DNA of 64,000 bases from sequence record LC727698.1; one strand, written 5' to 3'. The notes beneath the pieces are model-generated. The model was not told the origin of the DNA and searched no databases. It saw only the letters and a program-made list of their open reading frames with translations. Both the position numbers and the translations under genes were made by a program. This document shows, in pieces, positions 1 through 57,432 of the stretch. Numbering within the stretch: position 1 is the stretch's first letter; each line of letters starts with the position of its first letter.

Positions 1-1866
1 TATAGACCGGCGCCGTTAGTCGATGTAGGTCCTGTCCTACAATATAAATTTCTAGCAAATGAACCATTAGACGAAGCAACAGAATCGATGTCAATTTCGT
101 CTGGCACAGTTTCTATACAAAATAGTTCGATGTATACTTCTGGCAGCACAGTAAACAATTATTTCTATAGAAAATTACCTAGTATACTTAAAAATACCAA
201 ATTTACAATAGAACTGACAATAAGGTCAGAAGGCGAAATTCCGTCTACTAGTAATATAATAGGTACATGGAATCCATCTAACGAATTTTGGTTGTTATCT
301 GTAATTAACAACAATTTAGTATTTCAATGGAATAATGGAACTGCTACTGCCGGTACTAGACAAGTATTTACATTCAGTAATGTACAAGTACCTTCAGACC
401 AAGACGTTCATTTAGCCGTATGTAGAGATGACACTATGTTATATGGATTTGTAAATGGACAACTAGCAGGTTCGTTTGAAGTGTCATTTGCAGGGCATAC
501 TAATGTTGTATCGGGGTCTATATTCTCTACAAGAAGCATGGCCACCACAAATAACTATTTTAATGGATATAGAAAAAATATTAGAATAGTAAATGACAAG
601 GCATTGTATGTTGCACCATTCACACTAGCTAGCGTAACTATGGCTGATGTAAAGCCAGACTACTATACCCCGGAAGATGCTAGCTTAGTAGTAGGTCAAA
701 TAACATGTAAACGAAATTCATTGTTCCAAGAAACTATGAATACTCCTACTTTACTACTTACAGGTTTATCTAATTCTACAACAGGACGATTTGTAACAAC
801 TACTAATAATACTTCTGGCTTCCAATTTTCTCCTGTAACAAATTGGCAATCTGGCGATTATACAATAGAATTATATATAAACTTATCTACAGTAGGCGCC
901 GGCGGTGCCATACTAATAGGTCAATGGACATCTTCGGGTGGCACTGACATCGGATGGTCTATCTCTATGCAACAAAATGGAAGCGTCAGACATTTCTATT
1001 CCACAGACGGATTATACGACCAAGCAAACGGTAACTCTGGAGTATTGCAAGCACCTAATGGTACTTTAGTATTAAACAAAGATACCCATGTATGTGCAAT
1101 GCGGAAAAATGGGGTAATAGGATTATTTGTAGATGGTGTTAGACTAGCCCAGGTAAACGAGGCAAGGCCATTATGGAATAGTCAAATACCCATTAGAAAC
1201 ACATGGACTGCGCCAGCAGATGGATATGCGTTAGCAGAACGCTGGAATATAAGATGTATTTCTAAAGCAATGTATGATATAGACGGTTTCGTTCCGCCGG
1301 TTCGTTTACCTACATTTCCTAATTTATTAACAAATACAGGTAGTTATTCGCGCTCTGCATTGTCTGGTACAACTACTACAGCAGATACAATGGGAAATAT
1401 TATACAATTTAATTCCTCCGGACAAACATCCGGCGGCGGCTACCAAAAATATTTTATATATGGTTCTAAAAAAGTAGAAATAATAGGAAATACCATATCT
1501 TCAGATTCAACACAACAAATGAGATATGGTTTAACAAACACAACTCCTACCACATTTGCAGAGTCAGAATCTGATTTTAATTCCGGTACATTCCCATATG
1601 CGTATGCCGATAGAATTAACAGTGTCATTCAAATAGTTAAACAAGGTAGTGTTATAGGTAGTTTGCCTCATTCTACTGCCAACCATACCTTTAAAATAAC
1701 ATATGATTTCGAAAATAATCAGTTTACTTATGAAGTTACTTCTGGCACTGCACAAGGACAATCTGTTACTACAAGTCTAGATTCTACAATAACACAGAAT
1801 ACTAAGTTTGCAGTATGTGGGACCAAATCTAATATACAAATAACTTCTGTAAAAATACAACAATAA
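1..1866 (+). CDS. Virion/tail-associated protein with two LamG (concanavalin A-like) domains; 5'-truncated
   Basis: Frame 1 is open from base 1, so the true start lies outside the window. Two repeats of the type 'FTIELxI...W...H.A..R......FVNG' are typical of LamG_3 domains. Confidence 0.7.
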   Translation, partial: YRPAPLVDVGPVLQYKFLANEPLDEATESMSISSGTVSIQNSSMYTSGSTVNNYFYRKLPSILKNTKFTIELTIRSEGEIPSTSNIIGTWNPSNEFWLLSVINNNLVFQWNNGTATAGTRQVFTFSNVQVPSDQDVHLAVCRDDTMLYGFVNGQLAGSFEVSFAGHTNVVSGSIFSTRSMATTNNYFNGYRKNIRIVNDKALYVAPFTLASVTMADVKPDYYTPEDASLVVGQITCKRNSLFQETMNTPTLLLTGLSNSTTGRFVTTTNNTSGFQFSPVTNWQSGDYTIELYINLSTVGAGGAILIGQWTSSGGTDIGWSISMQQNGSVRHFYSTDGLYDQANGNSGVLQAPNGTLVLNKDTHVCAMRKNGVIGLFVDGVRLAQVNEARPLWNSQIPIRNTWTAPADGYALAERWNIRCISKAMYDIDGFVPPVRLPTFPNLLTNTGSYSRSALSGTTTTADTMGNIIQFNSSGQTSGGGYQKYFIYGSKKVEIIGNTISSDSTQQMRYGLTNTTPTTFAESESDFNSGTFPYAYADRINSVIQIVKQGSVIGSLPHSTANHTFKITYDFENNQFTYEVTSGTAQGQSVTTSLDSTITQNTKFAVCGTKSNIQITSVKIQQ

Positions 1867-12616: not shown

Positions 12617-13051
12617 ATGTACGATAAAAATTTTGTATCAATGGATCAAATGCCAGTTATTGTCAGTGACTTGGTTAGTGATATAGACGAAGCAGGAATT
12701 TCTCCTAAAGTTATTATTGCTATTAGCAAAGGTGGACTAATTCCTGCCACTATGATTAGCTATTATTATGATTGCCCTATTGTAACATACGATCCGGTAG
12801 AAGATTGTTTTAGTACAAATAATGACATAAGTTCTGAATGCATTATCGTAGATGATGTTATTGACACCGGTAATACTGTAAATTCTGTTATTTCTTTGTT
12901 AGAAGACGAATTCTTTTTTACGAAAGAAGACATTAGTAGAATTAGAGTAGCATCAATATTTGCAACAAGAAATAATACAATTGTAGATTTTTATCATGAT
13001 GAAATAAGTTACCATGATTCGGTAAGTTTTGAATTTAAACAATTTATTTAA
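12617..13051 (+). CDS. Type I purine phosphoribosyltransferase-like protein
   Basis: IAISKGGLIPA and PRPP-binding IIVDDVIDTGNT. Confidence 0.85.
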   Translation: MYDKNFVSMDQMPVIVSDLVSDIDEAGISPKVIIAISKGGLIPATMISYYYDCPIVTYDPVEDCFSTNNDISSECIIVDDVIDTGNTVNSVISLLEDEFFFTKEDISRIRVASIFATRNNTIVDFYHDEISYHDSVSFEFKQFI

Positions 13052-13121
13052 TATAAAGTTATTCTTTACTTTTAGTATGATTGCGTTTATAATGTATATT
13101 ATAAAATAAAGCGGATTATGT

Positions 13122-13994
13122 ATGAAACACAGATATACTGAAAAGTTTTTCTCAGTCCAGGGAGAAAGCCTACATACCGGAAAATTATGCACTTGGCTTA
13201 GATTTTTCGGATGTTCGTTGCAATGTAGGGGCTTTGGACAAAAAGAACCTGGAAATCCCGAAACATGGGTAGAACAACGACCGGATTTAATAGATGTAAC
13301 AAACATTACAGATTATAAACAATTACCGACTCCTAAGTATGGATGTGATTCAGACTATTCTGTATTTGCTAAATTTAAACATCTTGCAACAGAAGTCGAT
13401 CCTGTTGTAGTTGCAAATGAAATAAAACAATTAATTCCTAGTAAAACATTTGGTAAAAAAATAGGTCATGTATTTACGGGCGGAGAACCGTTAGTAAACC
13501 AAGAATCTATAGTAGATATAGTAAATTATTGGATAGATACTAATGATTATCCTGCATGGATAGGAATAGAAACAAATACAACTAGACCGTTAGAAAAATG
13601 CTTAATCGATTTAGTTAACAGATGCAAATCGATCGGTGTGCAATTTTATTTTTCTATGTCACCTAAACTACTTCATGTAGCAGGTGAACAACCCAAACGA
13701 GCTATCCATATAAATTTAATGAAGGAATATATAGATATTGCACCGGATAGCTATCTAAAATTTGTAGTAAATGAAGATCAGCGATCGTGGGATCAAGCAA
13801 AAAGTATAGTAGACACATTAAATGCTGATGGGTATTTACCGGATGTGTGGGTTATGCCAGTCGGAGGCATTTATTCCCAACAAACAGACCCTGTAATTGG
13901 AAGACTTGCAGATAAAGCTATCTTCGAATACGAATGGAATGTTAGTTTGCGTGTTCACGTATTAACCTGGGGTGACGATCAACTAGGTAGGTAA
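13122..13994 (+). CDS. queE: 7-carboxy-7-deazaguanine synthase (radical SAM)
   Basis: EKFFSVQGE, GCSLQC...GCDS (third Cys after an insertion), FTGGEP, SMSPKL, LRVH. Confidence 0.85.
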   Translation: MKHRYTEKFFSVQGESLHTGKLCTWLRFFGCSLQCRGFGQKEPGNPETWVEQRPDLIDVTNITDYKQLPTPKYGCDSDYSVFAKFKHLATEVDPVVVANEIKQLIPSKTFGKKIGHVFTGGEPLVNQESIVDIVNYWIDTNDYPAWIGIETNTTRPLEKCLIDLVNRCKSIGVQFYFSMSPKLLHVAGEQPKRAIHINLMKEYIDIAPDSYLKFVVNEDQRSWDQAKSIVDTLNADGYLPDVWVMPVGGIYSQQTDPVIGRLADKAIFEYEWNVSLRVHVLTWGDDQLGR

Positions 13995-14418: not shown

Positions 14419-15026
14419 AAAAAAGATTATTTCCATTTTGGTTATGGCCATATAGCTGGGGATTACCTGCTAAACAGAAAGCTATTGCAAAAGCAGAGTA
14501 TTATCTCGAAGGAGAAGAATTAGATAGGGAATTAGTAGCACTATCGAATACAACAAGCAAAGCCAAAGAAATTGAATTATTACATATTGATTTTAAATAT
14601 GGTAAAATAACAGAATACGAATACGATGTTGCTTTAGCTAAAACTCAATACGATCCGGGTCTGGCTTTAGACTTAAAATTAGCTGATATAGATTTAAAGC
14701 ATCATAAAATAAATGAAAGGGAACATAGCAAACGAATTGCTACCTTAAGAAAGTTACCTTGGGTAGATATAATAAAGATAGGCTTGTCTTCTTCTGATAT
14801 TTCGACAGGAGAAATGGAATTAGACTGGAATGAATATTTTATAGAAGAATTGCACGAATACGGATATGTAGGTAGGACTGATGAAGAAGTAGTAAATTTA
14901 TGGTTATCTACTTTATGTAAAAATATCGCATTAGACGAATTCGGTGGAATGGGATCTGTAGACGATCTTTCAGAAGATAATGACAAAATAGATAGCAAAG
15001 AAAACTATAAAAGGGAATTTAAGTAA
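14415..15026 (+). CDS. Hypothetical protein
   Basis: Overlapping-start ORF in operon. Confidence 0.7.
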   Translation: MKKRLFPFWLWPYSWGLPAKQKAIAKAEYYLEGEELDRELVALSNTTSKAKEIELLHIDFKYGKITEYEYDVALAKTQYDPGLALDLKLADIDLKHHKINEREHSKRIATLRKLPWVDIIKIGLSSSDISTGEMELDWNEYFIEELHEYGYVGRTDEEVVNLWLSTLCKNIALDEFGGMGSVDDLSEDNDKIDSKENYKREFK

Positions 15027-16012
15027 TGTCTAAAACTTATATTTTAATCGATACATTCAACATGTTTCATAGAGCAAAACATGTAATCAGGTCCTCCTCA
15101 TTAGATGAAAAAGTAGGCATGTGTCTTCATGTAATGTTTAACAGTATACGCAAAGTATACAGAGACCATTCTGCAGATCATGCTGTGTTTTGCATAGAAG
15201 GCAAATCTTGGCGGAAGGACTTTTATAAAGAATATAAGTTCAACCGAACAGCAGCTAGAATGGCAAGAACAGAAGCTGAAATCGAAGAAGATGCTGCTTT
15301 AATGGAAGCATATAACGATTTAATTACGTTCATTAATGATAAAACAAATTCTAGCGTACTACATCACCATAAAGCAGAAGCAGATGATATGATAGCTACT
15401 TGGATTCAAAATAATCCAAATGATAATCATATTATTGTTAGTTCAGACAGCGATTTTTTCCAGCTATTAGCACCTAACGTTAAAATATATAATGGAATTA
15501 CAGAACAACTAATCACATTAGAAGGTTTCTTTGATAATAAAGGCAAACCTGTAATTGATAATAAAACAAAGAAACCAAAAGTGGCTCCTGATCCTAAATG
15601 GTTATTATTTGAAAAATGCATTAGGGGAGATAAATCTGATTTTATTTTTGCGGCGTATCCAGGTGCAAGAGAAACTAGTTCTAAAAATAAAGTAGGCATG
15701 CGTGAAGTATTTGCCGATATGGATAATAAAGGTTACGCATGGAATAATTTTATGTTGACAAAAATTACAGATTCTGCTGGTAATGAATTTGTTGTTCACG
15801 ATAAGTACGAATTTAACAAAACATTAATTGACTTAACTTGTCAGCCAGATGATCTAAAAACAGAATTTAAAACAGTCGCAGATGTAGCTCGTAATAAACC
15901 GCCCGTATCTAACGTAGGCATCCATTTTTTAAAATTCTGTAATAGATGGGCACTAGAGCAAATCTCTAAATATCCGGACGAATTTGCAAAACTTCTTAAT
16001 GCTAAACCATAA
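15026..16012 (+). CDS. rnh: T4-type RNase H / 5'-3' exonuclease (FEN family)
   Basis: LIDTFNMFHR, EADDMIA, SSDSDFFQL, GDKSD. Confidence 0.88.
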   Translation: MSKTYILIDTFNMFHRAKHVIRSSSLDEKVGMCLHVMFNSIRKVYRDHSADHAVFCIEGKSWRKDFYKEYKFNRTAARMARTEAEIEEDAALMEAYNDLITFINDKTNSSVLHHHKAEADDMIATWIQNNPNDNHIIVSSDSDFFQLLAPNVKIYNGITEQLITLEGFFDNKGKPVIDNKTKKPKVAPDPKWLLFEKCIRGDKSDFIFAAYPGARETSSKNKVGMREVFADMDNKGYAWNNFMLTKITDSAGNEFVVHDKYEFNKTLIDLTCQPDDLKTEFKTVADVARNKPPVSNVGIHFLKFCNRWALEQISKYPDEFAKLLNAKP

Positions 16013-19556: not shown

Positions 19557-19758
19557 TTGCCCTTTTTTAATGATTAAAAAATTACGTTTTACTATGTTGA
19601 CTAACTATATAGTTATTTGCTTTAATAACACCATGCTTTGCAAAACAACAAATAATAGCATTCATAAAAATTGTTAATTATGTGTTGTTTTAAAAGCTAC
19701 AAGCTGTAAAATGTAGGTGTTAAACAGCAAAACATATTCAACCACAGAGGCATTATAG

Positions 19759-20874
19759 ATGGCTAAAAAAGAAAACATCGTAGAAACGTATCTTCGTCCG
19801 ACGGAGTGTGCTGCAATTATCCGCGGCATGTTCAAGGCGAAGCGTCCTGTGTTCCTCTGGGGTCCGCCGGGGGTAGGCAAGTCGGATATTATCGCCCAGT
19901 TGGGTTTCGAGGCTGACCGGCCGGTCATCGACATGCGTCTGATCCTCATGGATCCCACTGATATCAAGGGCATTCCGTACTACGATCCGAAAACCAATAC
20001 CATGCGCTGGGCTATTCCGTCCGATCTTCCGCAACCCGGCGAAACTACCCTGGACAACGCCATCCTGTTCCTGGACGAAATGAACTCGGCGCCGGCAAGC
20101 GTGCAGGGCGCTGCATATCAGCTCATCCTGAACCGTGCCATCGGTTCGTATAAGCTGCCCGATGGCGTCGACATTGTCGCTGCTGGTAACCGCGATACCG
20201 ACAAAGGCGTTACTTATCGTATGCCTAGTCCGTTGGCCAACCGTTTCGTTCACTTGCAGATCGAAACCAACTTCGAGGACTGGCAGCAGTGGGCGCTTAA
20301 CAACACGGTACACCCGGATGTAGTTGGCTACCTCACCCAGCACAAGCAGAACCTGTTCTGCTTCGATCCCCAAGATCGTAGCAAGGCGTTTGCTACTCCT
20401 CGAGCCTGGAAGTTCGTGTCCGACATCCTCCAACTCGCAGGAATCAACAAGGACCACCTGCTACGTGCGACTATCGCAGGAACCGTCGGCGAAAGTCACA
20501 GCTACTCCTTCATGCAGCACATGAAGTATGCTTCGCAGCTTCCGAAGCCGGAAGATGTACTAACCGGCCGGGTAACCGATCTCAAAGTCGAAGAGATCAG
20601 TGCTCGTTACTCGCTCGTGGTCAGTATGTGCTACACTCTAAAAGAGTGGCTGGCTGACGTAGCTGACGCCGACAAGAAGTACACTACCGAGGATTGGCAC
20701 AAGTCGGTAAACTTGTTCTTCGAGTACATGATGAACAACTTTGCCCAAGAAATGGTCATCCTCGGCGCGCGTACTGCGTTGCGCGAATACCAACTGCCGA
20801 TCAACAGAAAGTTGATCCCTTGCTTCACTAAGTTCTTCCAAGAGTACGGCAAGTTTATTGTCGACTCGAACTAA
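19759..20874 (+). CDS. MoxR-like AAA+ ATPase
   Basis: Walker A GPPGVGKS, Walker B LFLDE, AAGNR, LANRF; much higher GC than the flanks. Confidence 0.88.
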   Translation: MAKKENIVETYLRPTECAAIIRGMFKAKRPVFLWGPPGVGKSDIIAQLGFEADRPVIDMRLILMDPTDIKGIPYYDPKTNTMRWAIPSDLPQPGETTLDNAILFLDEMNSAPASVQGAAYQLILNRAIGSYKLPDGVDIVAAGNRDTDKGVTYRMPSPLANRFVHLQIETNFEDWQQWALNNTVHPDVVGYLTQHKQNLFCFDPQDRSKAFATPRAWKFVSDILQLAGINKDHLLRATIAGTVGESHSYSFMQHMKYASQLPKPEDVLTGRVTDLKVEEISARYSLVVSMCYTLKEWLADVADADKKYTTEDWHKSVNLFFEYMMNNFAQEMVILGARTALREYQLPINRKLIPCFTKFFQEYGKFIVDSN

Positions 20875-20882
20875 GTAAGGGC

Positions 20883-20917
20883 AAAATAAAAGGGGCTTAA
20901 AGCCCCTTTTATTTTAT
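20883..20917. terminator. Rho-independent terminator
   Basis: AAAAGGGGC-ttaaa-GCCCCTTTT. Confidence 0.85.
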
Positions 20918-30736: not shown

Positions 30737-31629
30737 TAGTTTCGGGGACCTTTAAGTTTTGCTAGTACATGTTGTTCTGACCCAGCCAAATGAGGGAAGA
30801 TCTTTATAAGTTTGTTCCAGTACGAATACGGCAAAAAATCGAGATTTATATGATCTAAATATTTTATATAATTACTATGCAACCTATTCCTCGAAAATAT
30901 AGTCAATATATGTCGTCCTGCTATATAAGACCAATCTATATTTTTAAGAAATTTAATACAACTGTCAGTAGACATTGTCTGACCATTTGCTTTATGCATA
31001 TAGAATAGCGAAGACATCCTTTCAAAAAGAAACCAGTGATATTGTTTATTTTTAGAAATAGTATCAAACCCTACAAATTTTACATATTCTTCAAAAACAG
31101 AATATCTTTTACTACAAAAAAAATTAAATACTGTTTTATCCAACAAAACGTTATGTCGTTTTAATTCTTTTAAAATAAGTCTTACTATGTTTAAATCAGG
31201 TAAAGATTGTATGGTACACAATTGCGTTATTATATCTTTAGATAATGCTTTTCTCGGTTTTAAATTCTTTAAAACAACATAAAATAATTTATGACATGTT
31301 ATAGGAACTTTTATAGGAAACATTGAATTTGAAAATTTTCCAATACATTGCCTGACAAGATATAAATCTTTTTTACTTATAGATCTGTTATATTCACTAA
31401 TAGAAGATGAATAATTACTTGATATAAAGTTTACTAATTTGGGACTTTTAATTTCCATAAGAACATTCAATACAGTAGCATTGAACGGTATATATTCAAC
31501 ATCAATAGAATTACAGACTGCAATTAGTGCATCTTTAGCTGAATTATTAGCAATTGTTATTTCTTTATTTTTTCTAAATTTAATGAAATATTCTAATTCA
31601 CTTAAAGCTTTAATGTAACTAATATCCAT
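30736..31629 (-). CDS. Hypothetical protein
   Basis: 297-aa coupled ORF. Confidence 0.65.
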   Translation of the reverse strand: MDISYIKALSELEYFIKFRKNKEITIANNSAKDALIAVCNSIDVEYIPFNATVLNVLMEIKSPKLVNFISSNYSSSISEYNRSISKKDLYLVRQCIGKFSNSMFPIKVPITCHKLFYVVLKNLKPRKALSKDIITQLCTIQSLPDLNIVRLILKELKRHNVLLDKTVFNFFCSKRYSVFEEYVKFVGFDTISKNKQYHWFLFERMSSLFYMHKANGQTMSTDSCIKFLKNIDWSYIAGRHILTIFSRNRLHSNYIKYLDHINLDFLPYSYWNKLIKIFPHLAGSEQHVLAKLKGPRN

Positions 31630-31719
31630 ACATATACCGTAAAAATTTTTACCATACTATAAAATATGTATATTCAATAGTCAACTGTGTTTGGTAACAA
31701 AATGTGGTAATTAGGCACT

Positions 31720-31748
31720 TGACATTGGTATTGTCTTTTAGTAAACTG
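31720..31748 (+). promoter_or_regulatory. Sigma70-like promoter with no downstream ORF
   Basis: TTGACA-N17-TAAACT. Confidence 0.7.
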
Positions 31749-31753
31749 TGCGC

Positions 31754-32480
31754 TTGCGTAAGAAATGTATATACGATAGTGCTATATGTATATACAGACA
31801 AGTGGCTCTGTTCCATCATTGGATATTGGTAGTAGAAACTATCCCCATCGTGCTGTTATTGTAGTTCCGATAGTGTCGGGTTAACGTTTTAACAGTTATT
31901 TAAATTATGATTTTGGGTGCCACAGAGATTGTACTTACTAAAAGGACTTAGTAAGAACCGCATATAATCTCGAAACTTGTGTAGGATGTTGGTCTAACCA
32001 CGGCATAGAATATATGCCTCAACTACTACACGGAAAGGATGATGCTCTGGTCGAAACAGAGTTTCTATAAATCTTTCAGTATAGACTCCGTATGGCTGAA
32101 AGTTGAAACACCAACATCAATAGACTATAGTTTTTGTTAGTGTGGCTATAGTTTATTCCGGCATTGAAAGTATATACAGTGATGCGAGACAGTAAGCATT
32201 AGTAGCAACTGTATATATGAGTAAGAGGATGCGTTTACAATGAGGAATTACCTATCGGTGCCCGCCTCAGGGATTGCACTTCCCGACGTACACTAAACTT
32301 CGTACCATACCGAAACATACGTTTCTGTTATTACGATTTCCTTCCCAAACGGGGAGGAAATCTTCTCCGCCCGAATATCATAAGATCAAAAGCATTAATA
32401 ATTAATACATAAAATTCGTTTAAGTAGTTATTAAGTATATGAGTTGTAGTTTACGAAAACGAATATACTTAATAACTACC
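31754..32480 (+). ncRNA. Putative large structured non-coding RNA, family not recognised
   Basis: No ORF of 60 aa or more; GC above the flanks; about 10 local hairpins plus long-range helices whose imperfections are mostly G-U on the + strand; promoter upstream and terminator at 32733-32760. Confidence 0.65.
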
Positions 32481-32594
32481 AGTGAAGCTTGCTTCGCTGT
32501 TTAAAATTGCAATTTGTATTTTCAATTTTATATTTCGAAATGTGTTTTTGAAAATCAATCTATAAAATATAATTTTAAATATTATTTTTAAATG

Positions 32595-32681
32595 TCATTT
32601 TGTGATTTTAATTTAAAATACTATTTCATGATTTAAAATGGAAATATATTAAACAATATCATTTTGTGATTTTAATTTAAA
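32595..32681. repeat. 23-bp direct repeat in AT-rich zone
   Basis: TCATTTTGTGATTTTAATTTAAA at 32595-32617 and 32659-32681. Confidence 0.8.
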
Positions 32682-32732
32682 CAATTCCATATAAAACTAT
32701 TTTGTCTATTTCTTTTATAATCTTAAAGTCAT

Positions 32733-32763
32733 TAAAAACCCTACAGACGTAGGGTTTTTATTT
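32733..32763. terminator. Bidirectional terminator
   Basis: TAAAAACCCTAC-agac-GTAGGGTTTTTA. Confidence 0.8.
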
Positions 32764-33443
32764 GATTATATGGTATTCGGTTTTAGATATTCAGATTATT
32801 ATAATTAATAATATCTGTACGATAACTATATTTTATAGAAATACATTTACTAATTACATTTATCAATGAATGGTTATTTTCTTTATATTTAATGCGTCTC
32901 AGGGTATATAGCAAATATGATAAATCAAGACACATAATATATTGTGTCTATATTTTTAATTTCATTAATCTACATAATTGTTTATTAATGTATACAGTTA
33001 TATACGTTATGTTGTAATAACAAACTAAATTATATAGAGAATACACATTAAATTCTGTTTTGTGTCAAATCAACATTACATATATCATTATGTATTGATA
33101 CTTGCTGTATATATAAAAATAATTAGTTATTATGTGCTTTAGAAGAATTCCATTATAATTAGTTTTCTGTGTCATTTGTCAAATGATGAAAAACATAATT
33201 CTTTCATCTATTTTTATTAAATGTTATTCAAGATTTATAATATAATTTTATAATGTTTGCAATTTATGACACAAGCTATTTTAATAGAATTATACTATTC
33301 AAAGTTTTGACTTATTTTGTGTGTAAACGACAAAAATAGGCATATATATAAAAAGCACACCTGTTTCCTGTATGAAACAAAATAGTATTTTATTAAAAAT
33401 AGTGTATAGTAGTAAAAAACATCATTAATCATGCACGCAATTT

Positions 33444-33665
33444 ATGGCAAACGTAATTAAAGAACTTCATCCCATTAAAGGATATTGCATAGTTGTGCGT
33501 CATCCGGGCGATACTAGATTTAGCTGGGTATCGCTAGACAATCAATATATTTTGGTAGACAATCCAGTACTTTTAAATGATGAATTTGATAATTGTAAAA
33601 ACGAATGGCCAGATGCTGAAATAAAAATAGTAGAAGTGTATGTTGTCCCGGAGAAGGTGTTATGA
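33444..33665 (+). CDS. Hypothetical protein (paralog pair with the next gene)
   Basis: C-terminus VEVYVVPEKVL vs MEIYLVPENFL. Confidence 0.6.
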   Translation: MANVIKELHPIKGYCIVVRHPGDTRFSWVSLDNQYILVDNPVLLNDEFDNCKNEWPDAEIKIVEVYVVPEKVL

Positions 33666-34389: not shown

Positions 34390-35547
34390 ATGAGTCAGAT
34401 GTACGTAACTATCACTAATGGAATGTACCGTAACCAGCAAGTAAACGGCACATTCCTTTTACTCGAAGATGTGAAAGTTACTGGGTCGGGAAAACGAGTT
34501 ATTAACGTATTAGGTGCATTGCCGGAATGGTCTCAACATAAATGTAGAGTTACACTCGGTAATGACGCAACAGTACAGTATTCGAACGAACAAGGAGAGG
34601 TTTTAGATTTGCCTAATGTTATACGTCCTTTTGTGGGCGAAAATAATAATAATAATGTTCCTGCATCTAGTCGCGGTACAGTGTATGAAGGCACTGCAAT
34701 AGAAATTGACTACGAAAAGCAATACCAACAACTAGAATCCGAAAACGATGCAATGAATCGTATCAAACGGACCTTTGAGATTGTAAATGAACTAACAGAG
34801 GCAGCCGCAGCAGGCGAAATCCGTTCTATGATCATTTCTGGTCCTCCCGGAATCGGAAAAAGTTTCGGTGTAGAAGAAACACTAAACAGGTGTTTCTTGT
34901 TGGATAAAATTAAAGATAATAAAGAACCGTTTGAGATCGTAAAGGGCGCTGCAAGTGCAATTGGTGTTTACCAAAAGCTTTACGAATTTAAAGATAAAGG
35001 TAAAATCCTTATTTTCGATGATTGCGACCGCGTACTATTTGACGAAGATAGTCTAAATCTCCTTAAAGGTGCATTAGATACTACTAAGCGTAGAACTATT
35101 TACTGGCTTAGTGAGTCCCGTGTTTTAAAAGAAAATGATATTCCACCTAAATTCGATTTCGAAGGTAGTGTAATTTTCCTTACTAACCTTAACTTCGAGG
35201 ATACAAAGTCCCGAATCGGAAGGCACCTAGAAGCAATTATGTCCCGGTGTCATTATTTAGACATGGAAATTAGTAGTACGAGAGACCAGATCCTTCGTAT
35301 TAAACAAGTTGTGCGCGACGGGATGCTTAGTAAATATGAATTTAATAACGGAGAAGATGAAGAAATCCTAGAATATATTATCGATAATCAGAATGATCTG
35401 CGAGAACTTAGCTTGCGTATGGTAATTAAAATTGCCGATCTGATTAAATTCAAAAAAGATGGTTGGCGAGAATATGCAGAGACAACTGTACTGAAACGGA
35501 ATGCAAAATTCCGGCGGCTGTATAACGAAAAGTACAGTGATATTTAA
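34390..35547 (+). CDS. AAA-family ATPase
   Basis: Walker A GPPGIGKS, Walker B LIFDD. Confidence 0.8.
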   Translation: MSQMYVTITNGMYRNQQVNGTFLLLEDVKVTGSGKRVINVLGALPEWSQHKCRVTLGNDATVQYSNEQGEVLDLPNVIRPFVGENNNNNVPASSRGTVYEGTAIEIDYEKQYQQLESENDAMNRIKRTFEIVNELTEAAAAGEIRSMIISGPPGIGKSFGVEETLNRCFLLDKIKDNKEPFEIVKGAASAIGVYQKLYEFKDKGKILIFDDCDRVLFDEDSLNLLKGALDTTKRRTIYWLSESRVLKENDIPPKFDFEGSVIFLTNLNFEDTKSRIGRHLEAIMSRCHYLDMEISSTRDQILRIKQVVRDGMLSKYEFNNGEDEEILEYIIDNQNDLRELSLRMVIKIADLIKFKKDGWREYAETTVLKRNAKFRRLYNEKYSDI

Positions 35548-53211: not shown

Positions 53212-53288
53212 CCCTCGGTAGCTCAGTTGGTTAGAGCGCGCGACTCATAATCGCTAGGTCACTGGTTCGAATCCAGTTCGAGGGACCA
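53212..53288 (+). tRNA. tRNA(CAU), Ile2-like
   Basis: Cloverleaf; anticodon arm GCGA-CTCATAA-TCGCT as in bacterial tRNA-Ile2; CCA encoded. Confidence 0.85.
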
Positions 53289-53310
53289 ATTTTAAGATGT
53301 TGTGCTTTTA

Positions 53311-53395
53311 GCCCGAGTGGTGAAATTGGTAGACACAGGAGACTTAAAATCTCCCGCTTCACAGCGTACCGGTTCGAGTCCGGTCTCGGGTACCA
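53311..53395 (+). tRNA. tRNA-Leu(UAA)
   Basis: GGAGA-CTTAAAA-TCTCC; long variable arm; CCA. Confidence 0.95.
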
Positions 53396-53445
53396 AACAA
53401 AAGATATAAATACTTAACAAGATAGGAAACTATTCTAAAATTAAA

Positions 53446-53521
53446 TGGCTAGTAGCTCAGTTGGTAGAGCAAATGACTGTTAATCATTGGGTCGTAGGTT
53501 CGAGTCCTACCTAGCCAGCCA
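53446..53521 (+). tRNA. tRNA-Asn(GUU)
   Basis: AATGA-CTGTTAA-TCATT; G73, CCA. Confidence 0.95.
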
Positions 53522-53547
53522 ATTACACTTTGTTGTATATTCAATAT

Positions 53548-53623
<76 letters not shown>

Positions 53624-53692
53624 ATTTTAAATAACAGTTGTATCTAAAGAGATACAATAGTCTAAATAAAATATTCATATAATGTTTCAAAC

Positions 53693-53769
53693 GGGACTTT
53701 AGCTCAGTTGGTTAGAGCGCGCGACTCATAATCGCTAGGTCACTGGTTCGAATCCAGTAAGTCCCACCA
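53693..53769 (+). tRNA. tRNA(CAU), Ile2-like, second copy
   Basis: Body identical to 53212..53288; acceptor stem GGGACTT/AAGTCCC. Confidence 0.85.
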
Positions 53770-53819
53770 ATTTTTATATACAAATCAAACTATACTTAAA
53801 CTATATAATGAATGAATAT

Positions 53820-53904
53820 GCCCGGTTGGTGAAATCGGTAGACACAGGAGACTTAAAATCTCCCGACGAAAGTCGTGCCAGTTCGAGTCTGGCACCGGGC
53901 ACCA
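53820..53904 (+). tRNA. tRNA-Leu(UAA), second copy
   Basis: Same anticodon arm as 53311; different variable and T arms; CCA. Confidence 0.95.
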
Positions 53905-54768
53905 AACTCCTACAAAAGGAACATATTATAGTATGTTCCTTTTTTATTATGATATTTTTATTATGAATGAAATAATGCATATATCTGCCAACACATACGT
54001 AATAGAATATCGCGTATTAAACAAGTTAGTAGTCACTATAAAAAATAATAGATCTTTTACATTATGGGTACATTTTGATATCGGTACATTTTCTATGGCA
54101 TGGAAATACAATGCAATATAGAATTAAAAAATGAAATACATTATTAATTTACAATACTCAACAGAAGTAATATATATGCCGTGTTTCAACATAATATCGT
54201 TATGCGATAATAGATCTGTTACTATCCTTTCTATTACTATGATATTTAAGATAAGATACTATTTGCATCCGATGTTCCGTTATATTCTATAATACATAAT
54301 ATTTTTATTGTAACAAATACCAGAAGTTCTTAGATAATATATAGCAATTCTGTTTATTATCGATATTGCGGTATACTTAGTATTTCTTATTAACCGTATT
54401 ACATAGAATAAAGAATGGAAAAAATTTTAACTATTTCACATAAAACATTAATATGTGAACTGTCGTTATTAAAATGGTCGAAATCCATAGTTTGTGCATA
54501 TTCTGGCGAAATAATATGGTATGTTCGGTTGCATAAGAAATGTTATGTAGTACAGCTAAGATGATAATGAACTGTATTTTTTCCTATTCGTACTATTTAG
54601 AACGCATCGTATGTCATGCAAAAATCTACAAAGGGTTTGTAGTCAGTAAAAATACTTTTTGTGAGAAATCCGTAATAGCTTTATACTTAATAAATAGTGG
54701 TAGTTATTTTCATAAATGTTACGTCGATCATTACTTAATTGTATAGATATATATTTTAATAAAAATAG

Positions 54769-54797
54769 TTGACCAAACGCACAAAACAGTATATAAT
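54769..54797 (+). promoter_or_regulatory. Sigma70-like promoter for tRNA-Arg
   Basis: TTGACC-N17-TATAAT. Confidence 0.75.
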
Positions 54798-54848
54798 GTT
54801 ACGCATACAAAGCATTATTACAAAGCTATCATTAGTTGCACAAGATAT

Positions 54849-54925
54849 GCGCTCGTAGCTCAGCTGGATAGAGCATCCGCCTTCTAAGCGGATGGTCGGG
54901 GGTTCGAATCCCTCCGGGCGCGCCA
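54849..54925 (+). tRNA. tRNA-Arg(UCU)
   Basis: TCCGC-CTTCTAA-GCGGA; CCA. Confidence 0.95.
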
Positions 54926-54946
54926 ATTTTTAAAGAGTGTTGTGTT

Positions 54947-55788
54947 ATGCAAACAATAAGATTTGACATAAGACTTCTCGATTATAGTAAGAAACAAGGC
55001 TTTTGCTGTATAGGTAAAGATATATTCGAAGTGTGCAGAAAAACTCGGATCAGTCCAGGACAGTTAAACTTACGAAAAGATTATATAGGACGAGTATTAG
55101 TATGGATTGATTCGAACTATAATCTGCACAATACCTGTTTAGTAGGCTGGACTCGGTATAAAAAATTTATTCATAATTAATAATATGAATAGATGCAAAG
55201 AACATCTACAATACAGAACAATCAAAAAGCATACATTAACTTGTAGGAAATGCAAAGAGTTATCGTTACAAATAAAATTATTTTGGCTTCAACAACAAGC
55301 ATTCAGTATTAGAACTGATACTAGCGGAATATACATATTCGATAATAAATATAATTCTATTTACGTATACTCTGTGGCTTGGTATAATACAGAATTATAC
55401 GGTAAAGGGACAATAATTTTAGAATAAACATGTATATATAAGAGTACCTCAATTAATGAATAATTATTCTAATGATACAGATATTCTAAAATGGATAAAG
55501 CGTAACAATAGAAAAAATGCACGTCTAATTTCATATATAGACGGAATATATAATATTGTTTATTTCGATGGCGGAAAAGCAAGAGTTGGCATAGTAAAAG
55601 ACAATATGCACTGCAGATACGGAATACATAGTCGTGGATCTATGTATTCGAAAGATATAATGAGCCTGTGGCAATCTAGTACAGGTTCGTGTTCGCCTGA
55701 TGATGTAAAGATTATGCAAGATTATCTAGACGATAAATGTATGCTTCCGGAATTTGATTTTTCTCAGATTAAAAATTTAAAATGGTAA
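54947..55788 (+). other. Three small hypothetical ORFs between tRNA genes (54947, 55185, 55456)
   Basis: Packed ORFs of 77-110 aa. Confidence 0.5.
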
Positions 55789-55811
55789 ATAATATAACAA
55801 TATAGTTTTAT

Positions 55812-55888
55812 CGCAGGGTATGCAAGAGGTCTAAGCAGAAAGGCTCATAACCTTTTTATCGTGGGTTCGAATCCCACCCCTGCAACCA
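55812..55888 (+). tRNA. tRNA-Met(CAU), initiator-like
   Basis: C1:A72 mismatch; anticodon arm AAAGG-CTCATAA-CCTTT; CCA. Confidence 0.85.
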
Positions 55889-55897
55889 GTTTTATAT

Positions 55898-55974
55898 CTA
55901 GGCATAGCTCAAGTAGGTAGAGCACTTGCTTTGGGAGCAAGAGGTTGGGGATTCGAGGTCTCCTGCCTAGACCA
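55898..55974 (+). tRNA. tRNA-Pro(UGG)
   Basis: CTTGC-TTTGGGA-GCAAG; C1-G72, A73, CCA. Confidence 0.9.
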
Positions 55975-55983
55975 ATTTACTAT

Positions 55984-56056
55984 GCAGTCCTAGCTCAATT
56001 GGTAGAGCACTGTCCTTCCAAGTCAGATGTTACGGGTTCGAGTCCCGTGGGCTGCT
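55984..56056 (+). tRNA. tRNA-Gly(UCC), CCA not encoded
   Basis: CTGTC-CTTCCAA-GTCAG (one T-T mismatch); U73 followed by CAA. Confidence 0.8.
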
Positions 56057-56813
56057 CAATATTCTAATATAATTGATTAGTATATCTAATCGATGGTTAG
56101 TGTAGTGGATGCATATGGAAATATAGAAGTATTAGTTATGCCATCTAACATAACGGTACTAGAATTACAGGCATATACAACAGAGCTATTGTATGTAAGA
56201 AAATCTCATTGTTTATGTTTATACCTTCCTGATATAGGAAATTATGCTTTATGGTTTTTTTAGACAGATAGGATAAAAATATAAATTGATATTATTCTGT
56301 TTAAGGAACTAGAATTAAATGGCAGGTTGCTTATTTAGACTAGATTTGTCTATTTTTCGTGAAAATGTATATAGTATTTCTAGTTTGTCTTATACAAAAT
56401 CTATATGCATTTCAATAAAAACTAAACCGACAAGCAATAGAAAACAATTAGAAATATATGTTGTAGATAAAACAACTGATTTTTTAGTTGCATGCAAGTA
56501 TTTTTAGCTTATCTATTTTGACTTGCCTTTAAAATAAATAACCATTATATATTTGATATAACAACTATTCTAAATAGAAATAAAACCATAAATACACATA
56601 ATAACGGTGTGGATTTATGGAAAACATATTTAGGATATCTATTAATGCTAACGAAGGTATTATACGAATATCCCCTACTTACTTTTTTAATGGTGTTTTT
56701 TATTCAAAGCATTTGAATATTTTTATAATAGATCCCGACGGATATCTAATAAGAAAAATATATACTTGTAGTACATTCTTATGATGATTTCTTTTAAATA
56801 TACAAAATAACAT

Positions 56814-56842
56814 TTGACAAAAGTATAATTATTTCGTATAAT
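56814..56842 (+). promoter_or_regulatory. Consensus sigma70 promoter
   Basis: TTGACA-N17-TATAAT. Confidence 0.85.
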
Positions 56843-56873
56843 AAGTGTATAAAATAACAAAAGAGAATTTTAA

Positions 56874-57233
56874 ATGATTTCCAAAATTCAAATTGTATAC
56901 GGAATATATCTTCCTACTGCCGATGCAAAAATTATATACGAAGACTCAGAATACGAATCTAATAAAATAAATAAAAATATTAGATTATTTGCAAATGATG
57001 ATTATTTAGAAGATAAGATTTTAGAAAATAAGGAATTCGAAGATAATCCCTATGTTCCGCACTTTTATGGTATCTTTTGTAAAGAATTCGATAATGACCA
57101 AAGTGCATACTTATATAATGTTCCTAAATCTTTTATAGATGAATATAATAATGTAGCTCCAGCTATTTTAGCTAGACTCGGTTATTTATATAGAGTTGCA
57201 GGAAAACAACCTTGTAGAATAATTTACGAATAG
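56874..57233 (+). CDS. Hypothetical protein
   Basis: ORF downstream of the consensus promoter. Confidence 0.65.
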   Translation: MISKIQIVYGIYLPTADAKIIYEDSEYESNKINKNIRLFANDDYLEDKILENKEFEDNPYVPHFYGIFCKEFDNDQSAYLYNVPKSFIDEYNNVAPAILARLGYLYRVAGKQPCRIIYE

Positions 57234-57247
57234 AATTAACTAGTTTT

Positions 57248-57337
57248 GGAGAGGTGATAGAGTCTGGTTTATTATACTAGTCTTGAAAACTAGCGGATCG
57301 AAAGGTCCCGTGGGTTCGAATCCCACCCTCTCCGCCA
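57248..57337 (+). tRNA. tRNA-Ser(UGA)
   Basis: CTAGT-CTTGAAA-ACTAG; long variable arm; G73, CCA. Confidence 0.92.
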
Positions 57338-57342
57338 AATAT

Positions 57343-57432
57343 AGATACTTGACCGAGTGGCTTAAGGTGCTTCCCTGCTAAGGAAGTGAGTTTGAAAAAG
57401 CTCCGTAGGTTCGAATCCTACAGTATCTGCCA
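57343..57432 (+). tRNA. tRNA-Ser(GCU)
   Basis: CTTCC-CTGCTAA-GGAAG; long variable arm; G73, CCA. Confidence 0.92.

Follow-up and report, generated by a model that had tools for sequence, protein, structure and literature searches.

A family of large pseudoknotted RNAs with three paralogs per genome in Wroclawvirus jumbo phages of Pseudomonas aeruginosa

The 64,000 nucleotides (nt) of record LC727698.1 analysed here, referred to as the window, derive from a jumbo phage of Pseudomonas aeruginosa belonging to the PA5oct group (family Arenbergviridae, of which Wroclawvirus is the sole genus), and contain a non-coding RNA gene, designated copy W, at positions 31755-32384 of the + strand. Comparison of W with three diverged homologs (copies P and Q of the same genomes and copy L of an uncultivated relative) identified it as the founder of a previously undescribed family of large phage RNAs with pseudoknots, a family supported by covariation and represented by three paralogs in each genome. 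We estimate at roughly 85% the probability that this segment is a member of a functional RNA gene family selected for its structure. Large, intricately folded RNAs are rare in bacteria and phages, the main examples being ROOL, GOLLD, OLE and raiA, and the earlier classes each led to unexpected biology or architecture. RNAs of this kind, large and ornate phage transcripts to which no function has been assigned, had been described before; new here are the family with its architecture and its multiplicity.

The 1.2 kb around the RNA locus were 100% identical to Pseudomonas phage 30-3 and 97.8-98.8% identical to ten further PA5oct-group records, and a BLASTN search of 50,697 phage records with the locus matched 11 near-identical Wroclawvirus genomes only. 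An earlier note, made from the sequence of the window alone, had proposed at this place an unrecognised, large structured non-coding RNA of the scale of ROOL and GOLLD that belonged to no known class. Its size, its non-coding nature and its novelty as a class were borne out, as the region is transcribed, has no match in Rfam 15 and shows compensatory changes in four homologs. The transcript itself had been recorded before: GenBank entry MK797984.1 lists at 246116..246734 (+) a 'putative lncRNA' (long non-coding RNA), ncRNA004, annotated from RNA sequencing (RNA-seq), which maps to window positions 31766-32384 (+) and is the PA5oct ortholog of W (98.7% identity). It is one of four transcribed regions of PA5oct without plausible open reading frames (ORFs), and its share of the phage reads was 0.08% in the early, 0.03% in the middle and 0.02% in the late stage (Lood et al. 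2020, Table 1, PMC7318152). The other three transcripts (ncRNA001, 002 and 003) are unrelated to ncRNA004. The published information found on ncRNA004 consists of the transcript boundary and these read percentages, with no structure, relatives or function reported in that literature. The locus is therefore already annotated as a transcript in PA5oct, and what is newly described here are its fold, its homologs and its paralogs.

The relatives of W were reached from a protein gene located 2 kb downstream (34390-35547), which encodes an NrdC.11-like ATPase with one 65%-identical relative in the Logan assemblies; the cluster mates of this relative led to a 5.5-kb contig (L019, from SRR32006999) with a 1.08-kb gene-free gap in the corresponding place. 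Positions 1281-1826 of this contig, which include copy L, align with window positions 31798-32420 at about 60% identity, and positions 1266-1790 align with W at about 58-62%. The use of the ATPase as anchor in IMG/VR yielded no relative. A search of PA5oct with an nhmmer profile built from the W and L sequences identified copy P (E = 6.5e-27) at ~12,866-13,500, in an unannotated 911-bp gap of the terminal repeat, and copy Q (E = 8.4e-35), a longer paralog, at ~75,830-76,800. In phage 30-3, copy P lies at 270,947-271,647, and it is conserved at 98.6-100% in 11 of 11 Wroclawvirus records. The nhmmer scan of the complete PA5oct genome gave exactly three copies, W, P and Q. Each Wroclawvirus genome carries the three paralogs, and the uncultivated relative at least one copy, a multiplicity that could not be seen from the window. 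Pairwise identity among W, L, P and Q ranges from 48 to 59%. Exact-pattern scans of IMG/VR, of JGI metagenomes and of GTDB genomes returned nothing, or chance matches in coding regions (peptides of the MILGAA type), and more distant jumbo-phage contigs encoding the same ATPase (L011-13 and L043-47) contained no copy of the RNA.

The fold is kept among these four copies. In a hand tally of 109 curated pairs compared between W and L, 64 were identical, 37 carried compensatory changes, 7 had changed on one side and still paired, and a single one was broken; sliding the 3' partner by 1-3 nt as a control broke ~60 of the 109. Three conserved stems in the W-L alignment were 7 bp or longer and carried two or more double changes, against 0.05 expected from column-shuffled alignments. 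The four-way comparison covered ten helices (P1, H2, H3, H4, H5 inner, H7, H9, X, Y and H14) and 54 pairs, and gave 212 canonical cells out of 216 (98%) and 28 covarying pairs with no break, in comparison with 76-98 canonical cells and 0-1 covarying pairs in the slid controls. For the 5' domain, an untouched MAFFT alignment had 98% of the cells paired (30-48% when slid) and a covariation score of 0.171 vs 0.091 for shuffled alignments (0/500). For H9, X and Y, a hand-cut, N-padded alignment had 98.1% of the cells paired (36-47% when slid), with double-sided changes in 16 of 22 pairs (0/500).

Selection was also examined among nearly identical genomes, for which 2.4 kb from ten records were aligned. 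The RNA region contained 19 variable sites (~3 per 100 nt) and zero indels, and the intergenic segment 32700-33200 of the same genomes had ~20 variable sites per 100 nt along with numerous indels. The AT-rich intergenic DNA at 32700-33400, indel-rich and about six times as variable as the RNA gene, makes a useful neutral yardstick. Sixteen of the changes in the RNA are transitions: those located in helices are A/G changes facing U in 11 of 11 cases, and the C/U ones are unpaired in 4 of 4 (Fisher p = 0.003). Both A-U and G-U pair on the + strand, and the corresponding pairs of the - strand would be broken. One transversion, U31980G, present in two genomes, disrupts one pair. The earlier observation that imperfect pairs are mostly G-U on the + strand agrees with the curated structure, in which 14 of 109 pairs are G-U and would mismatch on the opposite strand. 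These data indicate that selection acts on the RNA fold of the + strand, with stems that change by compensatory substitutions and whole hairpins that come and go.

Base composition and folding energy were also examined. The guanine plus cytosine (GC) content is 39% in 31760-32390 and 22% in the flanks, where it ranges from 13 to 28%. The + strand folds at -186.7 kcal/mol (z = -6.0 vs dinucleotide shuffles) and the - strand at -159.2 kcal/mol (z = -2.2). After correction for GC content, the + strand lies 2.3 standard deviations below the trend of the other 630-nt pieces of the window (rank ~23 of 848), a value that is notable, not extreme.

The region is free of long ORFs, as had been noted from the sequence: between 31700 and 32480 none exceeds 43 amino acids on the + strand or 56 on the - strand. 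The longest + strand ORF (32274-32405) has five polymorphisms, four of them at second codon positions, so it evolves without coding constraint. A short ORF starting at a conserved AUG (MILGA...) was considered and rejected, as it has 14, 10, 7 and 50 codons' worth of amino acids across the four copies and lacks a ribosome-binding site. An explanation without an RNA gene would have the segment be a decayed protein gene or a set of small ORFs, or else a repeat at the DNA level, for example the remnant of a mobile element or an array of protein-binding sites, and could appeal to the automatic calls of ORFs of 30-50 amino acids over W in several genomes, and over Q, and to the threefold repetition of the element in each genome. 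Against it stand the lack of conservation of ORF length and frame between copies, the second-codon-position changes, the transcription of the region, and the pairing of 98% of the helix cells despite 48-59% identity, which is unexpected for DNA repeats or pseudogenes. Because the substitutions are strand-asymmetric and pair-preserving, coding or DNA-only explanations are effectively excluded. The calls in question amount to 3-7 ORFs of 30-50 amino acids across window positions 31648-32560 in the automatic annotations of Cassandra, Ettore, PAC2, Deifobo and Paride, and are not kept as ORFs in the paralogs. Copy Q is overlain by three tiny calls (hypothetical proteins EST35_0143 to 0145), which are probably spurious; the start of EST35_0144 is the AUG within the invariant block UUAUGAUUUUGGG.

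From 5' to 3', the fold of the transcript comprises a 5' domain that a long-range helix closes, the successive hairpins H5-H9, a pseudoknot and a GC-rich 3' hairpin (Table 1), and the core common to the relatives extends from ~31797 to ~32375 in W.

Table 1. Features of the copy W locus, in window coordinates.
Feature	Position	Strand	Evidence or remark
Sigma-70-type promoter, TTGACA-N17-TAAACT	31719..31747	+	10/12 consensus positions
RNA gene, copy W, ortholog of PA5oct ncRNA004	31755..32384	+	RNA-seq annotation, GC, fold, homology
5' hairpin region with two GUAUAUAC palindromes	31764..31800	+	W-specific, absent from L, P and Q
5' domain, closed by P1 (31802-06/31919-23)	31802..31923	+	P1 covaries at 2/5 positions (U-A/C-G, G-C/A-U)
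5' domain hairpins H2 (31812-23), H3 (31828-43, AGAA loop) and H4 (31852-96)	within 31802..31923	+	All covary
Invariant 5'-domain strands CCCCAUCGU and GUUAUUUAAAUUAUGAUUUUGGGUGC	31843-51 and 31895-31920	+	Mutually complementary
Candidate helix P2	31844-51/31907-17	+	Complementarity only; sequence never varies
Hairpin H5, outer (31925-33/31963-71) and inner (31934-41/31948-55) stems	31925..31971	+	Covariation
Hairpin H6, variable tip and conserved base	31977..32033	+	Coordinated 2-bp indel, W vs L
Invariant block AAGGAUGAUGCUCUGG-UNGAA-ACAGAGU with hairpin H7 (32044-49/32057-62), NGAA tetraloop	32036..32062	+	
Hairpin H8, CUUUCAG/CUGAAAG, partly conserved loop GACUCNGU	32073..32102	+	3 compensatory pairs, W vs L
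Conserved CCAACAUCA (32111-19) followed by hairpin H9 (32120-32/32144-56)	32111..32157	+	Covariation
Pseudoknot, helix X (32160-66/32256-62) crossing helix Y (32241-45/32265-69)	32160..32269	+	Covariation
Hairpin H10 (32170-85/32196-218), W-specific insertion	32168..32220	+	Two A/G polymorphisms keep pairing
Helix Z (32230-35/32285-90), enclosing Y and hairpin H12 (32270-73/32281-84)	32230..32290	+	W vs L
3' hairpin H14 (32335-46/32351-62), conserved tail UUCUCC-CGCCCG	32335..32384	+	
Long hairpin with 27-nt arms (32424-50/32453-79) and short second hairpin (32482-97)	32424..32497	+	Sequence; probable 3' processing or termination element
Strong intrinsic terminator hairpin	32733..32760	+	Lies after the 13-15% GC stretch 32500-32720

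Within the 5' domain, the invariant GGG at 31915-17 has two alternative partners, the invariant CCC at 31844-46 or the CGCCC/CACCC of the 3' tail; the latter pairing, with GGGUG at 31915-19, shows one consistent change and is kept in W, L and P, being absent in Q. The H5 loop (31942-47) is conserved as A(A/U)GGA(C/U/A), and the stems around it change with their pairing maintained, as all five compared pairs of the inner stem covary in the four copies and W differs from L by 4 compensatory pairs in the outer stem. H9 is in gap-free register in all four copies, with covariation in 6 of 7 four-way pairs (9/10 by the formal count) and compensatory changes in 8 of its 13 pairs between W and L. In the X/Y arrangement the 3' strand of X sits inside the loop closed by Y, and covariation across the four copies, seen at 4 of 7 positions of X and 2-3 of 5 of Y, supports the assignment of these helices as a true pseudoknot. 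Helix Z, with 1 compensatory and 1 one-sided change, and H12, with 2 compensatory changes, are based on the comparison of W with L, and no clear counterpart of either was found in P and Q. H14 combines a 5' strand rich in pyrimidines with a purine-rich 3' strand (GGGGAGGAA), and all four copies have a strong GC-rich hairpin close to their 3' ends. A contact between the H8 loop and the 3' region (32090-94/32306-10) is tentative: it has two compensatory changes in L, and U32091C would break it in 3 genomes. The tentative helix K has the coordinates 1550-54/1719-23 in contig L019.

Two kinds of segment can be distinguished in the alignment. Essentially invariant in the four copies are GGAUAUUG, GUAGAAAC, CCCCAUCG, the 26-nt GGUUAUUUAARUUAUGAUUUUGGGUGC, GCUCUGGUNGAAA, CCAAC and UUCCGG; within the ten genomes, position 32052 of the H7 block is polymorphic (C/U). 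The differences between copies are gains or losses of whole hairpins at a few sites, namely the 5' leader, the tips of H4 and H6, the 3' bulge of H5 and the site between X and Y. This last site holds 49 nt in W (H10), ~180 nt in Q and almost nothing in L and P. The 3' half of H10 (32196-32218) recurs almost exactly at PA5oct 32,292-32,322, at the start of the coding sequence EST35_0095 in the terminal repeat, a recurrence that hints at how the insertion arose. A homolog of ribosomal protein S21 is encoded outside the window at PA5oct 170,955-171,161, and could matter given the resemblance of the H14 strands to Shine-Dalgarno and anti-Shine-Dalgarno sequences.

The helices proposed in the earlier note can be compared with this structure. 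All seven of its local stems exist in the sequence. CTTACTA/TAGTAAG, CTTTCAG/CTGAAAG, AATAGACTATAG/CTATAGTTTATT and ATTTCCTTCCC/GGGGAGGAAAT are conserved with compensatory changes in the relatives, two others (TGTATATAC/GTATATACA and TATATACAGT/ACTGTATATA) lie inside W-specific insertions, and GGCATA/TATGCC is located in a variable helix tip. The long-range pairs fared worse. From the pairing of 31906-19 with 32368-82, the inner GGGUG/CRCCC recurs in W, L and P and the remainder does not, and the other four (31833-40/32060-67, 31985-93/32110-18, 31867-73/32252-58 and 31875-80/32282-87) have no counterpart in contig L019. Individually, such pairs are at chance level for 650 nt, in which by our own estimate an 8-bp complement is expected several times. 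The RNA is indeed pseudoknotted, as had been claimed, through X and Y and not through the crossing pairs then proposed.

The promoter predicted in the earlier note is present, and sets the expected transcription start of W at ~31754-31756, close to the 5' boundary of the PA5oct RNA-seq unit (31766); the 3' boundary of this unit is 32384. The homologs have promoters of the same type that match the consensus at 12 of 12 positions, TTGACA-N18-TATAAT in L (contig positions 1230-1259), TTGACA-N17-TATAAT in P, and one with an extended TG in Q. The promoter of L faces a divergent promoter, as in the window. All four copies thus have their own near-consensus sigma-70 promoter, together with a long hairpin downstream. 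The 32-nt apex of this hairpin is identical in W and Q, with arms of different sequence that still pair, and the long hairpins of P and L are found in the equivalent downstream place. Beyond it in W, the stem of the terminator at 32733-60 is fixed and its 4-nt loop is hypervariable, differing in almost every genome; with a 12-bp stem, an A-run before and a T-run after, it looks bidirectional. The 13-15% GC stretch contains two copies (32591-32617 and 32655-32681) of a 27-nt direct repeat, AATRTCATTTTGTGATTTTAATTTAAA, unique within the window, which could be a protein-binding or unwinding element.

Each copy immediately follows a strong early promoter and precedes hairpins or terminators, which raises the alternative of a cis-acting leader that would modify RNA polymerase, as in the antitermination by HK022 put RNA, or control read-through into the + strand genes. 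The put RNAs act as folded RNAs, and the family resembles them and other cis antitermination RNAs in being a phage element placed just behind an early promoter in more than one copy per genome. The next downstream genes are co-directional in W, P and Q. On the other hand, put RNAs have ~70 nt and are ten times smaller; the W transcript appears to end before the downstream genes, as its RNA-seq unit, annotated as an ncRNA in its own right, stops at 32384; the first + strand gene lies 1.06 kb beyond W, past the strong terminator; and the next downstream gene in contig L019 is on the opposite strand. A cis-acting role is very unlikely in the light of these data, even with a phage that relies on host RNA polymerase through its whole cycle (PMC7318152).

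The genes next to W are a 297-amino-acid orphan protein and small ORFs, with the nearest HNH gene 4 kb off on the opposite strand. The search with the flanking proteins gp352 and gp351 gave no homologs beyond the Wroclawvirus group. In contig L019, a homolog of gp351 (structural protein) at 276-1076 (-) adjoins the RNA and the orphan gp352 is absent, so the neighbour gene of the RNA is not conserved.

Comparison with known RNA classes was negative throughout. A cmscan of the window against Rfam 15 at the gathering score, the check suggested in the earlier note, gave no match at the W locus, and scans of the individual copies (W, L, Q and P) with cutoffs of E ≤ 10 or E ≤ 1 gave none either. ARAGORN found no transfer RNA (tRNA) or transfer-messenger RNA (tmRNA) within 31000-33500, and by these two programs no match was obtained to tmRNA, RNase P RNA, 6S RNA or signal recognition particle RNA. 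This agrees with the earlier reading of the sequence, which had seen no tmRNA, RNase P or clear intron core. The models of group I (RF00028) and group II (RF00029 and D1-D4) introns gave no match, and neither a P7/G-site nor a domain V was recognisable by eye; a 5' GUGCG (31748-52) lies upstream of the expected transcription start. The family resembles phage group I and II introns in its multiple copies per genome, its conserved core with a pseudoknot and its variable, insertion-tolerant peripheral hairpins, but the copies are intergenic and start from promoters of their own, so that flanking exons are missing. For guide RNAs of IscB/TnpB (HEARO/omega RNA) and retron msr-msd there was no Rfam match and no adjoining nuclease or reverse transcriptase gene. 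What W shares with L, P and Q is the promoter, the P1-closed 5' domain with its invariant blocks, the H5 AAGGAY loop, H9, X/Y and the GC-rich 3' hairpin.

Similarity is closest in kind to ROOL and GOLLD, which likewise are phage-encoded, untranslated RNAs of several hundred nt with many helices and pseudoknots (PMC12286853), and for which no function or protein partner is known (PMC12286853). The covariance models of ROOL (RF03087) and GOLLD (RF01998, conserved 3' half) were not matched by W, L, P or Q. Unlike these classes, the new family comprises three diverged paralogs in each genome, every one of them with a sigma-70 promoter of its own, and is known so far only from Wroclawvirus and one relative. 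ROOL and GOLLD are usually located beside a tRNA array, whereas the 12-tRNA array of the window (53212-57429) is 21 kb from W; and ROOL is as abundant as 16S ribosomal RNA (PMC12286853), compared with at most 0.08% of the phage reads for ncRNA004. An RNA-only homo-oligomeric assembly through kissing loops and A-minor contacts, like the ROOL and GOLLD nanocages, would fit the similar size and complexity of the RNA, and W carries three self-complementary GUAUAUAC motifs plus a UGCA-containing loop (32274-80). The motif GTATATAC occurs 5 times in the 64-kb window, 3 of them inside the W RNA. The palindromic motifs, however, belong to insertions that L, P and Q lack; this, the missing model match even at E ≤ 10, the distance to the tRNA array and the low abundance make such an assembly improbable.

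We tentatively favour a trans-acting folded scaffold or decoy, a reading to which we give somewhat less than even odds. Host RNA polymerase can start at the promoter at 31719-47, and the transcript with its multi-domain fold would act in trans early in infection, with the invariant 5' domain as a platform that binds a phage or host protein, as scaffold or decoy, and with dispensable variable peripheral hairpins. A frozen 5' domain stands beside freely varying stems; this domain looks like a recognition surface, and a trans-acting folded RNA is therefore the leading reading. GGA motifs of the RsmA type are not enriched by hand estimate, and the GAUGAUG, which resembles a C/D box, has no conserved CUGA partner.

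Several observations weigh against the family as described or against this role. Within the phage genome, no sequence is conspicuous as an antisense target for the invariant blocks, and the protein genes adjoining W, P and Q include no paralogous pair, so that no partner is pointed to. Only four diverged lineages are available, three of them paralogs of one genome and the fourth a single 5.5-kb Logan contig, which rules out phylogeny-aware statistics of the R-scape type. The helix tables and the four-copy alignment were cut and registered by hand, favouring the proposed structure, the 5'-domain MAFFT alignment being the sole untouched one. H7 is partly degenerate or broken in paralog Q, and paralog P folds equally well on the + and - strands. 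Documented transcription concerns W, not P or Q, and the abundance of the transcript is low.

The main rival to the trans-acting scaffold or decoy is a folded primer RNA of early replication origins, comparable to ColE1 RNA II or to the T4 oriF/oriG transcripts, with three copies for three origins. The fold would decide whether the 3' part stays hybridised to the template near AT-rich DNA, and RNase H or 3' processing would yield the primer. ColE1 RNA II is a transcript of ~550 nt from a sigma-70 promoter, with a multi-stem fold relevant to its function, lying upstream of DNA that must open and with RNase H involved; T4 has several replication origins. The RNAs described here have a similar size (~550-630 nt), promoter type and multi-stem fold, and occur in three copies per genome in large intergenic regions, reminiscent of the several T4 origins, with W and Q at strand-switch points. 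They contain a conserved purine-rich tract (GGGAGGA) near the 3' end, and AT-rich DNA (13-18% GC) follows W, L and Q at 100-300 bp, with direct repeats behind W. RNA level peaks early at a low steady state, and dependence on host RNA polymerase is combined with a phage-encoded RNase H. This enzyme, which is virion-associated, is encoded at PA5oct 229,345-230,331 (~14,995-15,981 in the window), and could matter for priming. Despite these points we regard an origin primer as unlikely. There is no sequence relation to RNA II, and no conserved antisense promoter of the RNA I type was found. No origin has been mapped in Wroclawvirus phages, and the cumulative GC skew shows no switch beyond the effect of gene orientation. 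The AT-rich stretches downstream cannot be aligned between copies, and AT-rich sequence is ordinary intergenic DNA in this genome. T4 origin transcripts are not known to need a conserved fold, and a ten-helix pseudoknotted fold exceeds known priming requirements. If it were true that the RNAs mark origins, they would be the first handle on the replication start of these 287-kb genomes. That the family constitutes a new functional class with an activity of its own, be it a folded primer that sets the three early origins of a T4-like jumbo phage, by a ColE1-type mechanism in a virus, or a ribozyme or RNA machine with the invariant 5' domain and the pseudoknot as its active or ligand-binding core, is a doubtful proposition.

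The family is defined by covariation, and three versions of it that diverged naturally are carried by a phage of P. aeruginosa PAO1 that can be cultivated and manipulated genetically. These versions give indications of which parts are essential, as the invariant 5' domain and the pseudoknot are kept and whole hairpins are dispensable; since they occur in a tractable phage, the function is testable by deletion, pull-down and cryo-electron microscopy. The results also correct the annotation of Wroclawvirus genomes, which include phage-therapy candidates: several of the tiny 'hypothetical proteins' called over W and Q are unlikely to be genes, and the records lack two RNA genes.

A separate observation concerns the gene of a virion 'ATPase' (PA5oct gp335) at window positions 19700-20900, with 45-55% GC in a genome of 32% GC. 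On its - strand, this segment has a GC-corrected folding energy below that of every other piece of the window. The gp335 gene may have been recently acquired.

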